A stretch of 64,000 nt of DNA, taken from NCBI GenBank assembly GCA_002104945.1, contig MCFH01000010.1:930001-994000 (forward strand), in the 5' to 3' direction. Numbering within the stretch: position 1 is the first letter of the stretch; each line of letters begins with the position of its first letter. Both the position numbers and the translations under genes were made by a program. Below, in pieces: positions 3,142 through 14,837 of this stretch. The notes under the pieces were generated by a model, which saw nothing but the letters and a program-made list of their open reading frames with translations, was not told the DNA's origin and did no database searches. This stretch comes from Piromyces finnis finn (taxonomy: Eukaryota; Fungi; Neocallimastigomycota).

Positions 3142-6100
3142 TTTAGATAATTTAAATTGTACTCTTTATATTAATTATTAAATATTATTGTTATTAATAT
3201 TTTTTTGTATTATTATGTATTAGTTCATTTAATAAAATAGTCATAAAAATTTTTTTTATTATTTAATAATCAAAACTTTAAATCACTTTTTTAATTATGT
3301 ATAATGTATAAAAAATAAAATTATATTTTATATTATTTTCTAAAGTTTTAATATATCAATAAAATATTTTTTATTCATTTAATATTCATAGTATATTACT
3401 TTTATAATAATATACTATGATTTATATTATTCAATATAATGTTAAAAATTATATTTTTAAATAATGAAGATAAAAAAAAAAAAAGAAAAAATAGGAGAAA
3501 ATAATCCTATATATATGAAAAATATATATATATATAAAATATATAAAAAATATTAAATATTAAATTATTAATAAAATAAATATTAATATAAAATGGAAAA
3601 TTTAACCAATTTCAAAACAATGGGTTTTAATATAAAAGTCTATTAAAAAATATAAAACACAATGAATAAATTTATTATTTATAGATTTGCATTGTTAATA
3701 AATGAAATTTATCTTGCTTTAATATAAAAATTTTAATAATCATGGTTATTTATAAAAAAAAAAAACAATGTAAAATTTTCATGTATAAGAAAGTATAATT
3801 ATTATTTTTTAATTTATAAAAGCAAAAATATTATTTAAATAAGTTTGTGATTATAAAGTTTGGTAAATCTATAGAAAAGTAATATAACATATATTATATT
3901 ATATGAGTAATATATGTGAAAATAAAACTTTTAATTTAAATATTGAACTATAATATTTATTATAACGGAAAATTTTCGTTTAATATATAAACTTAATTCA
4001 ATAATATAATTTTTTTGGGAAAATTTACATATCTAACATACTTTTAAAGAAAAATTATAATTAAAAATAAAAATATTATAAAGTTTAATTATTAATTATA
4101 ATAATTAACTGGAATTAGAATAAATGATATATTTTCATTCTTTGATATCTACACAGAAAAAAATTGGTATTAAAAAAATAAAGTATTTTTTTAATTAATA
4201 AAAATTACTATTTAATTTTTTTATCATAACAATGGAAATTGTATAAATATCTATTAACATGTTTATTTTTAAGTGTACACAATTGCAATCTATATTTATT
4301 AATAAATATTTAAATAATATATATAAGAATTTAAAAAAATAATAATACTATAATATATGAAAATACAAATTAGTATATATTTTAAAAATTATAAATAGAA
4401 ATTTACCTTGAATAAAATAATATAAATGATAGTGGTAGATTATATGTTACTAAAAAAAGCTTCCTGTTACACATAAAAAAAAGATATGATAAATGTAAAA
4501 AAAAACTTTTTTATATAATTTCATTTTAAGGAAAATACAAAATAATATTAATCTTATAGTAACATATTCTTAAAGAAATAAATTTTAAAAAATATAATAT
4601 TTTAGTATTTTGTATAATAAACATATTTTCATTTGATTTTTTTTTTTTTTTTTTTTTTCAATTTTATCATTTACTTTCTCTTTATTATAATCAATTTATG
4701 TTTTCTATATTATTTATTAAGAATTTAATTTAAATTTACATATTATCATTCATATAGTAAATTTTCCCGTATTGAATTGGAGAAAAATAACCAATAATTT
4801 AGGTTACCAAAAAAAATAAATTTTATTATTATATCTATTTTAATCTTTTAATAATTGGATGTTGTACAAAACTCTTTTTTTTTTAAGTCTATATGTTTAT
4901 TAATAGTCTTCAATTATATTACTTCAAAAGGTTACATTTCTACTTTTAGCTTTTTTATTTTTGTGTTAACATTGTTTTGAATAACAATATGAATTAAACG
5001 AAACAATACGTTTAATATAAAGACATTATTCTTTATTACAATGGATTTAATATTGCTATTATGTTAATAACAATGGTTAAATTATGTTTAAATTAAATAA
5101 TGATATATGAAATTACCTTTTTTTTTTTTTTTTTGAAAAAGAAAAGTTACATTAAGTATTAAATAACAGATAACAGTAATACTATATAAGTATTTATAAA
5201 TTTATAAATATTTATATATGTTCTATGTTCTATACATTATTAATGTTTATTATATTATTAATACTATAATAGTAATAATAATTTTTATATATAATTAATT
5301 TCGTTTTATTCTCAATAAATGAAATAGCGCATAAATATTTATTGGATGATTTTTAATATAATATATGATATAAAACAAAAAATTTTTTTAATTGATTTAA
5401 TTATTTTAGAAATAAAGTCTAACCAATAACAACAATTTTTATTTTTATTACTGAAATTATTAAAAACAAAACGAAGAAATATAATAAAATAAAGAAATAA
5501 TAAAAAATATTAGAATTATGAATTATATAATAATTGTATTTACAAAAAAAACACTTTTAACAAAGGCAATTGTTTTAATATTTACATCTTTTCTTTAATA
5601 ATAATGTTTTGTTACAAATAAAACTTTAAAAAACACTTTTTGTGCTTCATAAATAATTTAATTTTATACTAATAAATTATATTTTATTTTTTAGTATCTA
5701 CAATTTTTGTTTTTATAACTAATAAAGTTTCTGTAGTAAATAATTTAATTTTTTTTCCAATGAATATAAATAATATAAATATTCATTTTATATATTAATA
5801 AATGCGTTTTTTTTTGTATGAAATTGATTAATAAATTGGATAAAAAATTTTTTGGTACATTTATCTTTTTTTTTTAATATAATATCAAGCCGGAAAAAGA
5901 TAATAGATATCATTTTATTTCAATAATAATAATTACATAGCAATATAATTTCAATTTCATAATAATATATTGTAATTTTTATGGAAATATTATAATTAAA
6001 AATTATATCATATTATTATGTAATTGTTATTATTGAAATAGAATGAATAGTAAATAGGAAAAAGTATAACAAAAAAACTTCATGTAGATATTAAAATAAA

Positions 6101-8208
6101 ACTAATGCTTTTGCATATTGCATACTCTTTCTATATTACTCTATTGTTTAAATTACAATAGAAATATTAACTATATTGTTTTAAAAATTAAATTCATTGT
6201 TTTAATGTATTAATATTTTAACTAGTTATTTTATTTTAATATTTAAAATAAAAGTATTCATTAAGGAAAGACATTATATTTAAAAATTTTAAATATTTTT
6301 AGTAAATTTTCAGTTTTGGGAAATTAAAATTTTAAATTAAATTTCTATTTTTGAAAAAATCTTAATAATATTTTTCTAATATTGGGAAATTTAATATTTT
6401 CTTTATTAAATATTTATTACTAATAATACATTTCATTAATTTTTTATTTTTATAATTCAAGAAAAGTGGAAAAAAATATAATGAATTTTTTTTTTTTACA
6501 TTATGGGAAAAAATGAAAATGTAATTTGAAACTAACATTTATTTGTACCAGATAAAAGTCAATTAAAATCTTTAATTATTTTTATATTGATATAATTATT
6601 ATGTTATATGATAAATATATGTTAATATTCATTATGTAATTTTATTAGTATACTAAGTTTAATATACAAATTTTCCATATTTTAGATGGATTCATAAAAA
6701 AAAAACATATGCCAAAAATAAATAAAAAAAATATTATTGATTATTCATTTTTCCTATTTTCATTTTCATTTTTTATTTTTTATTAATTATTAAACTAATT
6801 TACATACAAACACATGTAAAATATATTTAATAAGTAAATAAATATAATTGAGTTTTGTATAAAAAAATATAAACAATAATATATAATTATTATAATTTAT
6901 TATATTATATAAGTATTATTAACAATGAAAGTATATTTTAGTAAAGCAAAAAGTGAATGTTTTCCATTCTTTTAATTATCTCATTGTTTTATTCACAATA
7001 GATACATTACATGACATTGTTATAATCATTAATTAATATAAAAAGTATTGTTTTATTTAAATAAAAAAAAGTAAACATTTAAACAAGCGTTTAAAATATT
7101 ATTAATGATTTTAATTATTTTGTGTAATAAAAGTAGTATTTTCAAAAATTTCAAAATGTATTTTTAGTATATACTTTTTTTTTTTTGTAATAAATTAAAT
7201 TAAAATATTAAATTCAATTACTATTTTTTAACTAATTTTTATTAATTAATTATATAACATCTAATATTAGAAAAAAAACAATTTTTGAAAAACTTTATTT
7301 TAATTTTTAAAAATTGAAATAAAAAGATTATATTTTTATATTTTTATTAATTAAATATTTAACAAATAGGTTAATTATTAATAAAAATATAAAAATATTT
7401 TAATGTATAAAAACGAATATGAAAACAATTGATAATTACCTTAATTAAGTTTAATTATAAAAAATAATTTAATTTTTTAAACCAACTGAAGGATTGAAAA
7501 TCTTTCATTGATTGATGATAAATATTAATATATGTATTATTTCTTGTGTATTAATAATTGTTAAGATATTTCTAAGAATACTATGGCTATTATAATAAAA
7601 AAATATGGGTAATAAACAGAATTAAAAAATATAAAAGTTTTGTTTTATTTCATTTAATTTATAAAAGTTTAAATTACAAAATAATTTAATAATAAATACT
7701 TTTAGAAAATGAAATACTACAACTTTACATCTTATAGTGTTTTTTCAAAAGAAGCCAGTTTCTATTTGAAAATTCTGATTTTATAAAGAATTTTTTAATA
7801 TAACACTTTTTCTTTTTTAATGTAATAAATATTAATTCTATAATAATGTTTTATATATATATTTTAATTATAAAATCATTTTCAAGAAAAACTTTAATAC
7901 TATTTAAATGACTTAAAGTTTTTTATTAATTAAATTAATTAAATTTCTCATTTTAAAATTAAATTAATTTTTATTTTTAATTTTATTTATGTTTTGAATT
8001 TTTTTTAAAATAAAAAATTTACCTTTTCACATAAAACCAGATTAAACTTTTATATATATTATAAATTACTAGACTATTTTTAAAAATTATAATAATTTAG
8101 TATATTTTTACTAATACTATAGAGAAACGATTAATCATATAAATTTTTTTAATAATTATAAAATTTTAAAAAGCTGAAAAGGGATTTAATAAATGTGTAA
8201 CTTAAAAA

Positions 8209-11200
8209 ATGAATGTAAATCCAATTAATGTAACTACTATTAACAAAAACAGAAGCAAAAAACACAAGAAATCAAAAAACTCAACAAATGAACTGTTGAA
8301 TTTAAGCAATAAAAGTTCTAAAACATTATTGAAAGCTATCCAAATAGCTAAAGAAGAAACAAACTATTTCAAAAATTATTATCAATTAAATTTTAAAAAT
8401 GAAAATATAGAAAATGAGAATAATACAAATAGTCCATTGACAATACCATCTCGTTATCAACAACAATTTCTTCAAATCCTACTCAACCAAAATAATAAAA
8501 AATATAATAATAGAAATGCATATGAGAGTCAAGATATTCCATCTATAGCTGCATATTCTCAATCACCTTTATTTCCATCATCCACTATCGTATTACCTAA
8601 ACATTATTATCAACCACAAATTCAACAACAACATATATATCATCAATGTCATCCTTCACCAATAAATAATTGTGTAAATAATACTAATGCTAATAATATA
8701 AATAAATATTCTCATGACATTCATAACATTAATCTACCTAATAGTCAGTATGTTGTTTCAAATTCAAACACGAAATTTACTCAGGATGAAATAGTTTCAA
8801 ATTGTCCTCCTATACCCCAACAGTATCAATTGAAATCATCTATTTCTTCAAATAGAAATAGTCATCATGATAATGTTAAAGTTAATGACACTAAATCAAA
8901 TTATAAATATCATGATGAATCTCAATTTTCTGTAAATTCATATCATAAAGAATTTAACAAACAAAATTTTAACAAATCTAATTCTAATATAAAAGATTCT
9001 GAGAATGTAAAAAAGAATGTAACCATTAATGAAAATAAAAATAGGAATTATTATTCTAAAGAAAAAAAAGAAAACTCTTTAAATAATGTTCAAGGTACTA
9101 TATACTAAAAGTAATAATAATAATTTTTATTCTTTTAATAACTATAATAAATTTTATGAATATAATGTTAATAATATAATTATATAATCTTTTTTATATT
9201 TATTTTTTATTTTTTTTTATAAAAAGATATGGATTTAGAGAAATTATTAAAAATACAAACAATGCAATATGAAGAAATTAAAAGATTAAAAAGTTATATT
9301 TTATCAGACTCATCAAAAAGTAAATCTAATGGTAAAAAAAATATAAATGAAGAGGAAAAAAATAATAATGAAAACATTGAAAATAGTTCAAGTGAATATA
9401 TAAATAATAAAGCAGAGTTTTCTGCAATATCAAATGATAATTATAATTCAAGAGAAGAAAACAATAATTCATATATACAAGAATCACAAGAATATTCTTA
9501 TGATAATAATGAAGGTATTTATGTCTATTGATATAAATTTGAAATGAATATAAAAATGATTAATTAAATAATCACCTATCTGTTTATTAACTACAAAATA
9601 TTATTAATTTATATATATTGATTGTTTTGTTATAGTTTTTTCTGATAAGTATAACGAATCACCAAACCTTTTATATAATAAAAAATATAGTAGTAAAGTT
9701 AAAAATATAAAAAATGCTACTAAAAGTGAGGAAAAACCAAAATTTCAAATAAATATTAATGAGAAGCAAGTATTTAAGTCACGATCTGGATTATTATCAA
9801 AACATACTATTAAAAATGATATAAAGAAAAGTGATGATGCATTAAGAAAAAGTGACGCGAAATTACGAAAATTAACTAAAAAAGTGCCTATATGTGTACC
9901 AAATTATAAACCAAAAATTAATACATATCATCCAAAAAAGAAGATTCATAGAAAAATAAATTCAAATGAAAATAATAATTTTTCTTATGAGGTTACTATT
10001 TATAACTAATAATAACATAATTATATGAAATGTCACATCTTTAAAAATAATATTTATATTTTAATCCCTATTTAATGTGATTTGATTATTTTTTATTATT
10101 AGGAATTAAATGATGTTGATGATGATGTACCTATAAAGTTAAATAATAATGAAAAAAAAGAAGATATTAAAAAAGTTGTAGAAGAAGCGATTAAAGAGAT
10201 ACTTAATAAAGAATTATTAAAAAATTCATTAAGTGATAATAAAATGGAAACCATAATAGATCAAAACAATTATAACACCATAAAATTAACAAATTTTTCT
10301 GAAATAGTGGAATCAAAGCCTCAATTTCCTAATAAAAGCCTCAATTCAAATATACCCAACTTTATTATTGATGATACCTTAGATACCACAAAGCTAGAGA
10401 ACATTAATAATAATTTAAATACCAGTTTTGAAAATATAGAGGATATATCAGCAATTATATATAATAAAGATATTGATTTTACTATAGATGATGAAATATC
10501 TAGAAATATTTCAAAAGAGATAGAAAATTTTAAAGATAGTCAAGCAGGTATAATATTTAAATTATAATAAATATGTTATTAGTCACATATATAGTTAAAA
10601 AAAAAGTAATTGTATTATATTCAATTTTTTAAATATATTCATTCTTTTTAAATAATAATGTTAAATATATAATAATGAATAATATAAAAATTAACATTAA
10701 ATTATGAAGATGATTATGAAAAATCGAAAAAAGAGTTAAATTGTGAAAATTTAAATATTATAAAATTACCTGAATTTCCAAATGTTAATGATTCAAAATC
10801 TATTAATTATAATGTCACTCACGATGATCAATTTATTAGAAAAATGGAAAGAATAGCTAGCAATAATGTTATTAATGATACTACCAAGTCTAATAGAGAT
10901 GATGATAAAATAACATTTGATAATGATTATAATAAAGAAGATACTAATTCTTTTTATAATAAAATGAATATAAATGAAGAATTTAAAAATGAAGATATGA
11001 ATAATGAAAAAGATCAAAATAATGATATTAGTGACAACTATAGTAGCAGTTACAGTGATAAAGATATTTTAAGGAAATTGGATTCTGATAATGGAAGAGA
11101 TTCGAAGAATTTTGCGAAAATGAAATGGAAATCAATGAAAAAAGAAATACAACAGGAAATTAATACAAAATTAAAAGAAAACAAAAAGTTAAAAAAAAAT

Positions 11201-12447
11201 GAAAAACAAAAAAAATTAAAAAATTTATTTATTAATTTAAATAATAATTCAAATATCAATGATACAGAATCATTTGATATTACGTCTTTTGATTCATCGT
11301 CTAAGTCGGCAAATAGTTCTTTGTCTTCCATGTCTCATTTAAAAACAGCCAAAGAATATTGTAAAAAACGAAATAAATTGAAAAAATTGGAAGTATCTAG
11401 AGATAAAATTATTAGTTCAAGGGAAAGAATATATAATAAGGAAAAAGATTTTGATAAAAATTTAAAAAGAGAAAAGATTTTAGAAGAATCATTAAAAAGC
11501 GAAATAATCAATAGTGACATTAATGAAGATTCTACGTATTCTAGTACCTTTGATAAAACAGAGGATGATAACAATGAAGAAAGCTTTGATCAAAACACCA
11601 ATTCCTTATCATATTTTTTTTACAATCCAAATTTAAAAGTAAAAAGAATTATATCCAATCCTATGGTTAAGTCATTTATAGATTCTCGAAATAAGAATAA
11701 TAGAAAAGTAATATCAAGTGGTATACCTGATGAAACTAAAAACAAAAAACAAGGTATAATATAAAGTAAAATTTTTACTGTAAAAAAAAGGTAAAGAATA
11801 TTAATTTTATTATTTATCGTTCTATTTATATATAGAAATTGAGTTATCTGATCCAGAAAGTAATTTATGTTTTTTATAATAATTTATATACAAAATTAAT
11901 TTTTAATAATATATATATATATTTACTTATGACTGTATATTTATATTTAATTTTTTGTATTTTATAAAATGTTATAATTAAATTTAATAATTTATAGAAC
12001 AAATAAATGTGATTCGTTTATCAGCATTAATGAAAAAGAACATTATGCAGGGAAGAGAAAGATTTTTAAATTATTTGAATGAAAACTCATTGAATGGTTT
12101 TGGTTGTGGTACCTTTCCAGATGATTTAAAAATGGAAAATAATGCTATTGAAAATGAAATTTATTCAGTATTTAATCCATGGGAAATTATTGAAAGGTAC
12201 AATTTATATAAATGACAAAAATTACATTATTATTCATCATTCCTTTTATATTTCGGAAAATTTAATCAAAAATTCAAAATACTTAATAATATCCTCTTTT
12301 TTTCAATGTATAAATAATTTTTTTGTTAGTATTTCTGATTTTATTTTAGATGAGATTATTGAAGAAAATGCAGAAGAAATAAACCATAATTTAGATCAAT
12401 TTATTGAGGATTTATTTAATGAAGAATTTAATCCAACAAATGAATGA
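8209..12447 (+). CDS. 8-exon ~1100-aa protein, probable Moonraker/KIAA0753 (MNR/OFIP) centriole protein homologue
   Basis: Phase-consistent exons 8209-9094, 9227-9514, 9636-9991, 10103-10547, ~10710-11753 (acceptor least certain), 11836-11859, 11998-12196 and 12330-12447. The spliced C-terminus reads MKKNIMQGRERFLNYL...SVFNPWEIIESISDFILDEIIEENAEEINHNLDQFIEDLFNEEF, resembling the recalled MNR C-terminal motif. Gene existence is high confidence; the family call is moderate. Confidence 0.65.
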
Positions 12448-14837
12448 TGTTATTCATATTTATCAAATCATTTATTATATAATCTTATGCTATAATAAAA
12501 ATAAAATGCAATAATTATATTTAATATTAAGTATTCTATTATTTAAATTAATGAAGCTTATTAAGTATTTAATTACTCAGCAATAGCTGTCATCATCATA
12601 ATAATAGAAATATATGGATCATATATATTATAACAAATTATAACTATTAAAAATTCTTATAGAAATAATTTCTATTATACTAATAGCAATAACCTTATTA
12701 ATATATCTTAAAAATAACCAATTTTATAATATAATTAATTATATATTATTTCTCTATCAAAGAATTCATTATAATTCATTGAAGTATTTAAAAAATTAAA
12801 GTTTTAAATATTCATTAAAATCACAAATTAAGTTAATGAAACTCTATTTGGCGTAGATTAATATTAAAAAGATTAGAATGATAATTAATATTTATTACAA
12901 TGAATAATAAGGAATAGTGCTAATATTATTTTATAAATATTATTAATTATTATATTAAAATATAAAAATTATGTACTACTTAATAAAAAGAAAGATTATA
13001 TTTTTATAATTAAATTTTAAAAAGGATTAATTAACTATATATAAAATAGTTAAATATTTTTAAATTTATTTTGATTACTCATTTTTTTCTTTCATTTCTT
13101 GATGTTAAGTACTTAATAAATTTAGTAGTAATTTATGGCTAAAGAATTTTTTATACAGAATAAAATAACTTTCCAGGTTAAAGTGTTCCTTTTTTTAACT
13201 TTTTAAACTTTTTATTTTAATCAATAAAACATGAGTTGATCATTTAATTAATAATGTAGTTTTTTTCTTATTTTATCTCAATTTTTTGAATTTAATATAT
13301 TAAAATATATTAAAGTATTAAAGTATTAAATGTTTCCATAAAAGTAAATATTTATTTTTTCTTTTTTTGTAAGAAATAATTAAAATTTATATATTAAAAT
13401 ATATCATAGTATATATAAGATTCGATCAATATATCATTAAATTAATATAAAATATAAGAAAAGTATTTTTTTTTTTTTTATAATGAAAAGTCTAAATAAT
13501 AAAAATATTTATTGATTAGTAGTATAAAAGTATTTAGCATTCGTATAAGCTTTTTTTTCTTTTATTATTCAAATAATACCTATAAAAATATGTAATATTT
13601 ATCAAATAAATGTTATAAATGATATAATTTTATATTTATTGGAGTTTGTGGAATTATTTTTTGTTAATTTTATACTATACCTAGCCATTTTTATTTGAAA
13701 TAGTCCTACCAATAAAATAAGTATATAATAAAAAGATAAATTTTAAATATATTTTTTTATTTTACATGGTTACATTTTACATTTTAGGAGATAAAATATT
13801 TTTAAATAAGATTTAAACTACTTTTCTATGACAATTATAACTATAGATATTGAGCTATACAAAATACAATTACTATAATTTTTATAATATCGCTTTAATG
13901 AGATAATTGTAATAAACTATAACTATATATGATAAATATGTGAAAGATTATTAAAATTCATATTTGGAAAATATTGAATAATAATATTATAATTTTTATA
14001 TATAATTAAATATAATAAAAAAAAATTGAGATTATAATTTAATTAAATTGAACCAATTAAAATTATATATTAAAATCTATTTTATAATATATTTATTTAA
14101 TTTAATTCATTTAGCAAATATATTATTTTTGAATAATAGTAAAAAAAGTTTGAAATTTTAACTATATTTTTATGTTTTCTTTTAGAGTCACAGTTGTGGC
14201 TTGATATTTTATATCATATCTACTATTATAATTATATCCAATAAAATGAATATAAAATTGAAAGATTAAATTAATGTAATACGTTATGTAAGTTAATAAG
14301 ATGTAATACTTATATTATTTTTATTATTTTGAGTTCTTTGCAATTCATTCTTTTTAATATAAAAAATGTTTCAGTTAGACTTTTGCAACATTAATGAAAG
14401 AAAACAGCCTATTTTAATTTTGGCAATTCAATGAAATTTTATTTTCCATATTTCATTTAATTTTAAAAAATATTTAAAATGATAAAGATTGTGTTGAATT
14501 AAAGAAAAGCAAATTAGATAGTTTCATGTATGTGATATTTTTAATAACTTTTTTTTTTTTAAAACTTGGTATAGATAAAAAATCAATATTATTATAAAAT
14601 ATCAAAGAAATAAATAAGGTAATTTGTATGTTTTACTGAAAATAAAAAAAAAAAATTGAAAAGTGTATTTTCTACTTTTCAAATTTAATTATAAAAATCA
14701 TTTAATTATAAATTATAAAAAAGGTAGTATTTATATAATATTATTTAATACCTTTTTAATAGTATTATATATTATATAAATATATTAAAATATAAAATTT
14801 ATCAATCTAATCTTTATAAATAATGAATAAATAATAT

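Follow-up and report, generated by a model that had tools for sequence, protein, structure and literature searches.

A gene hidden by splicing and expressed in Piromyces finnis, a candidate divergent orthologue of Moonraker/KIAA0753

The 64,000-nucleotide (nt) stretch of Piromyces finnis DNA analysed here (the window; C2:930001-994000 of the assembly, which comprises 56.46 Mb in 232 contigs) carries a gene that we consider a candidate fungal orthologue of the centriolar protein Moonraker (MNR, also named KIAA0753 or OFIP). Coordinates below are window positions unless stated otherwise. The genome around the locus has a G+C content of ~10-25%. The source is an anaerobic gut fungus of the Neocallimastigomycota type, at ~15-20% G+C. 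Between 8209 and 12447 on the plus strand the list of open reading frames (ORFs) gives fragments only, and when the DNA is read these open frames chain through GT..AG introns. An earlier note on this DNA had proposed a gene hidden by splicing, and spliced transcripts indeed join the exons into one frame. Window 8209-12447 (+) is thus one expressed gene with eight coding exons. The joined coding sequence measures 3360 nt, corresponding to 1119 codons and a single terminal stop, and the gene is single-copy in its own genome.

Splicing was followed in transcript contigs from four public runs, all made on this organism and deposited by three studies. Because the introns are missing from these contigs, they represent RNA. 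A 3793-nt contig (run X1, record 1) spans 8100-12600 with every intron gone; it overshoots these ends by ~53 nt and 118 nt, and sets the minimum extent of the mature transcript at 8100-12600 (+). After a 2-nt shift of the quoted coordinates, the joints fall at 9514/9636, 9991/10103, 10547/10710, 11753/11836, 11859/11998 and 12196/12330. The first intron (9095-9226) was inferred from the contig piece 8100-9094 and the next one, 9231-9512; the four letters that separate the two lie within a skipped repeat. Joints at 9972/11167, 10467/11198 and 11224/12409 were rejected as repeat artefacts, since their sides of 21 letters lie in low-complexity sequence. One contig of run X4 (10090-10256) begins 13 nt inside intron 3, at 10090, with exon 4 starting at 10103, which suggests the presence of some unspliced or partly spliced RNA.

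All exons lie on the plus strand. Exon 1 (8209-9094) starts with the ATG at 8209 in an ORF running to 9108, is cut at the donor GT at 9095, encodes residues 1-295 and ends in phase 1. It contains a conserved N-terminal block (8260-8493, residues ~18-95) that reads NELL.LS.KSSK.LLKA..AKEE.NY.K.YY ... QQQFLQ in a three-species alignment. Exon 2 (9227-9514) was placed from the contig pieces 9231-9512, the joint 9514/9636 and a frame check. It is followed by the basic and conserved exon 3 (9636-9991), bounded by the joints 9514/9636 and 9991/10103, and by exon 4 (10103-10547), likewise defined by transcript joints. Exon 5 (10710-11753; joints 10547/10710 and 11753/11836) forms the long N/K/S/E-rich, low-complexity middle of the protein. 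Exon 6 (11836-11859) is a micro-exon of 24 nt encoding EIELSDPE, and both of its joints (11753/11836 and 11859/11998) are found in 4/4 runs. The exon chain first proposed from the DNA had passed straight from the long exon to the IRLSALMKK exon, omitting exon 6. The C-terminal domain is divided between exon 7 (11998-12196, from transcript joints), which contributes a helix (RLSALMKKNIMQGRERFLNYLNENS), the loop NGFGCG.FPDDL and the segment SVFNPWEIIE, and exon 8 (12330-12447, joint 12196/12330). The FNPWEIIE-S-ISDF junction, which had been set beforehand as a test of the gene model, is kept in the transcript contigs. The proposed protein end at NEEF needs correction, as translation continues to ...LFNEEFNPTNE and stops at 12445-12447.

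The encoded protein has a strongly biased composition (N 16%, K 13%, S 11%), and its acidic residues are about as numerous as its basic ones. In most 60-residue segments N, S, Q and T together make up 30-47%, and the 1119-residue protein is mostly low-complexity and probably disordered. Residues 421-480 (K+R 0.28, in exon 3) and 781-840 form basic stretches, with K+R in the range 0.28-0.30, and the last 39 residues are acidic (D+E 0.33) with no K or R at all. When AlphaFold2 was given the three-species alignment of exon 8, it returned a single long helix over residues 3-32 that is acidic and amphipathic (mean predicted local distance difference test score, pLDDT, 84). For exon 7 it modelled a helix at residues 2-31 (pLDDT 70-79), whereas the remainder, a loop and a short helix near FNPW, came out at low confidence. 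On these models the C-terminal tail looks like a helix-loop-helix, one that may fold on a partner.

Relatives of the gene were compared from contigs that originate in enrichment or gut metagenomes, and were assigned to species B (L002-L005, 99.3-99.9% identical to one another), species D (L006-L014) and species C (P0003 only). Automatic splice models for species B and D had unreliable introns and were replaced by block identities taken from tblastn. The exon plan, together with the intron within IIE-S-IS, is common to the window gene, species B and species D. Identity to B and D reaches 80-87% over the last 105 residues encoded by exons 7-8 (82-86% for exon 7 and 84-87% for exon 8), 68-74% for exon 3, 40-53% for exon 4 and 35-38% for exon 5. 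Exon 5 nevertheless holds conserved islands, WK.MKKEIQQEI..KLKENKKLKK and SYFFYNPNLKVKR.ISNPMV.SF (P0002, P0003). Overall identity of exon 1 is 46% to species B and 32% to species D; its invariant columns bunch at residues ~18-95 and the remainder aligns poorly. Over exons 7 and 8 the ratio of non-synonymous to synonymous substitution rates (dN/dS) is 0.07, at a dS of 1.1-1.4, and the C-terminal tail is under strong purifying selection. By identity, dN/dS and the helical models, the C-terminal domain is the most constrained part of a fast-evolving protein. Conservation is concentrated in three islands: the N-terminal helix block, the basic exon-3 block and, above all, the 105-residue C-terminal tail. 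When a cDNA or intron-less copy of the tail was sought in the metagenome contigs, none was confirmed, and the degenerate junction pattern gave 0 hits.

A micro-exon is retained at the same place in three species, measuring 24 nt in the window (11836-11859), 27 nt in L002 (~3918-3944) and 18 nt in L006 (~4920-4937), and its shared sequence amounts to a loose ...E..DPE/LE pattern only. Micro-exons may be the reason why automatic gene models miss the C-terminus.

MNR/KIAA0753 counts among the human ciliopathy genes, with oral-facial-digital and Joubert syndromes as its diseases; at the distal centriole its product is the tether for OFD1, FOPNL and CEP90. Genes resembling FOPNL and OFD1, which the earlier note had proposed looking for, are both present in the same genome. 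A FOPNL/FOR20-like gene on the minus strand of L001 (G000 C13:839685-842798, ~2164-1330) matched FOP_dimer with 30.5 bits; on the contig it is placed at C13:841185-841298. Its exons, whose borders were judged by eye from the DNA with no RNA check, encode a TOF-like start of 30 residues (ELEQLKQLVSDSLVKDGTLGKIK), 39 further residues, a LisH segment of 30 residues (LELICDFLNFYGMTYTKSVLLAEA) and 27 residues with a PLLY motif. A LisH_2 match of 45.6 bits was obtained on the minus strand of L015 (G000 C174:126449-129529, 1468-1701), in an exon that reads ...INSMIIDYLKASSYEFTLSVFLPECGM; the LisH sequence resembles that of OFD1, of which this gene is probably the orthologue, with its OFD1-like N-terminus at C174:127949-128029. 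CEP120 (PF12416/DUF3668) was matched with 96.8 bits at G000 C152:40441-40929 (+), within an open frame of 1033 codons. Counterparts of FOPNL, OFD1 and CEP120 therefore co-occur with the candidate in the genome of a flagellated organism. In mammals, KIAA0753 is recruited by CEP120. Its residues 1-300 bind CEP120 (PMC8559671), and MNR has been reported to bind microtubules and to recruit OFD1, FOPNL and CEP90 (PMC9484695). The KIAA0753 C-terminus is described in PMC13507227, with reference to Chevrier 2016, as necessary and sufficient for binding FOPNL.

We put the probability that the gene is a divergent fungal orthologue of Moonraker/KIAA0753/OFIP at roughly 0.55. Circumstantial support comes from the position of the most constrained part, the C-terminal tail, which is where KIAA0753 is reported to bind FOPNL, and from the presence in this genome of CEP120 and of genes resembling FOPNL and OFD1. 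At 1119 residues the fungal protein is similar in size to human MNR (PF15718; Q2KHM9, 967 residues). Like MNR it appears to be a scaffold that is disordered over most of its length and conserved at its extreme C-terminus, the part that in human is reported to bind FOPNL (PMC13507227). It also has basic stretches, MNR being a microtubule-binding protein (PMC9484695), and it shares with MNR the company of FOPNL, OFD1 and CEP120. In contrast to MNR, the fungal protein is extremely rich in N and K and none of its exons matches PF15718. Its setting also differs, as CEP90/PIBF1, another partner of MNR, is reported absent from fungi (PMC13358043). The protein further resembles the disordered distal-centriole scaffolds C2CD3, CEP135, CEP162 and CEP290 of flagellated fungi, which are long, low-complexity basal-body proteins poorly found by ordinary searches (PMC13358043); unlike the present protein, each of these carries a Pfam domain or coiled coils of its own, and the exons described here match none of them. 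Paramecium is said to have an OFIP homologue, which would be another non-animal member that places the family before animals (PMC5374602). For this reason the MNR family probably predates animals, and its occurrence in a fungus is plausible.

Several results weigh against an MNR orthologue. When the exons were scanned one by one with PF15718 (MNR; a 964-position profile with a 27-bit cut-off), none of the seven larger exons gave a match at E<=10 (the micro-exon of 24 nt being too short for such a scan), and a six-frame search of the fungus's own genome with the same profile yielded 0 candidates. The 2026 fungal flagellum atlas, covering 184 proteomes, lists MOONR (Q2KHM9) without a fungal homologue and regards it as likely animal-specific; PIBF1 (CEP90) likewise lacks one, whereas OFD1, CEP20/FOPNL, C2CD3 and CEP120 have fungal homologues (PMC13358043). 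A HMMER search of 1.84 billion representative proteins with exon 7 (E<=0.001) returned no animal or chytrid protein, its sole match being P0001, a gut-fungal ORF fragment of 65 residues. The search also returned nothing from non-flagellated fungi, an absence that agrees, if weakly, with an MNR orthologue, given a 65-residue query that is short-reaching and a library whose fungal proteome content is unconfirmed. In addition, acidic amphipathic helices can match by chance. The human KIAA0753 C-terminus would carry RF..YL, FNPW.I.ES.S and, five residues before its end, ..EF; this putative likeness serves as a lead and not as evidence. Against such a human sequence, the fungal tail would require an insertion of ~25 residues between the RF..YL helix and FNPW. 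No printed KIAA0753 C-terminal sequence was found in the literature.

These results are compatible with a disordered scaffold specific to the gut-fungal lineage and unrelated to MNR, whose helices would bind another partner and whose tail would resemble that of MNR by chance or in appearance only. We regard this as a serious alternative that nevertheless falls short of an even chance. Beyond the missing PF15718 matches and an atlas without a fungal MOONR (PMC13358043), it draws on the compositional bias of the tail, with its D+E of 0.33 in the last 39 residues, and on the location of every relative found on gut-fungal contigs. In word-index searches, exon 5 and a profile built on exon 7 retrieved exon-sized ORFs only (P0001-P0006), all from gut-fungal metagenome contigs. 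The length window of these searches, however, puts proteins longer than ~600 residues out of reach of exon-sized queries, so that distant kin are expected to be missed. The exon-by-exon Pfam test is similarly low in power: given the local-entry cost and the filters of HMMER, we reason that a local profile of 964 positions is unlikely to pick up a distant relative from fragments of 38-65 residues, and its null result therefore weighs little. A lineage-specific scaffold would also leave aside that the FOPNL-binding domain of MNR likewise lies in the tail and that the partner genes are present. It is improbable that the protein is instead a functional analogue, a different centriolar or flagellar scaffold in which a helix docking FOPNL/OFD1 evolved independently. 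Short helical docking motifs can converge, the claimed resemblance is at the level of motifs only, and MNR is reported to lack functional conservation in Paramecium (PMC9484695), so the tether may vary by lineage. If the proposed alignment is right, however, it runs without gaps to the C-terminus with an equal distance from EF to the end, and descent is the simpler explanation. A pseudogene or transcribed junk, which the very low-complexity, AT-rich sequence and the missing database name might suggest, is highly improbable in view of the uninterrupted frame of 1119 codons after splicing, the spliced transcripts in three studies, and an exon plan kept across three species at a dN/dS of 0.07.

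Other searches brought up no rival family, the seven larger exons containing no other credible Pfam domain. Exon matches to TcA_TcB_BD (E 0.074), Sigma54_DBD (0.034) and DYNC2H1 (0.18) were at chance level and far below the cut-offs. A sequence search of the PDB with exons 7 and 8 gave chance matches to MORN4, Sso1 and PAN2 and found no MNR entry, and a feature search of the ESM Atlas with the same exons produced no usable match. On balance, the observation of the fungal gene is real and stronger than the first sequence reading could tell, and its interpretation as MNR is plausible and unproven.

If the gene is an MNR orthologue, its product would act in zoospores as a scaffold on the distal wall of their basal body. 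The conserved C-terminal tail would dock the TOF-LisH protein FOPNL and, through it, OFD1; the N-terminal part would be brought in via CEP120, and the basic stretches would touch microtubules. We infer the homology to MNR, the binding of FOPNL and the basal-body localization alike, and each may hold. A broader proposal, whose chances we judge to be evenly balanced, is that Moonraker is not animal-specific and that its FOPNL-docking tail was kept from gut fungi to humans. Zoospore basal bodies would then build a distal MNR-FOPNL-OFD1 module without CEP90/PIBF1, which would make MNR rather than CEP90 the ancestral opisthokont tether of the module.

A verified fungal MNR orthologue would correct the 2026 atlas (PMC13358043) and date the contact between MNR and FOPNL to the opisthokont ancestor or earlier. 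It would also indicate that gene models hide basal-body proteins in fungal genomes that are very AT-rich and rich in introns and micro-exons. Confirmation would add a new, very divergent member to a known family and module, an incremental gain that involves no new mechanism or kind of system.

Two minor features of the transcripts complete the description of the locus. The transcribed leader contains an upstream ATG at 8193, in another frame and 16 nt 5' of the start codon, which opens a short frame (8193-8222). Relative to the window, run X3 shows three differences, each in single contigs (10338 G>A, 10874 A>G and 11517 A>G), which probably reflect another strain or allele and not RNA editing.

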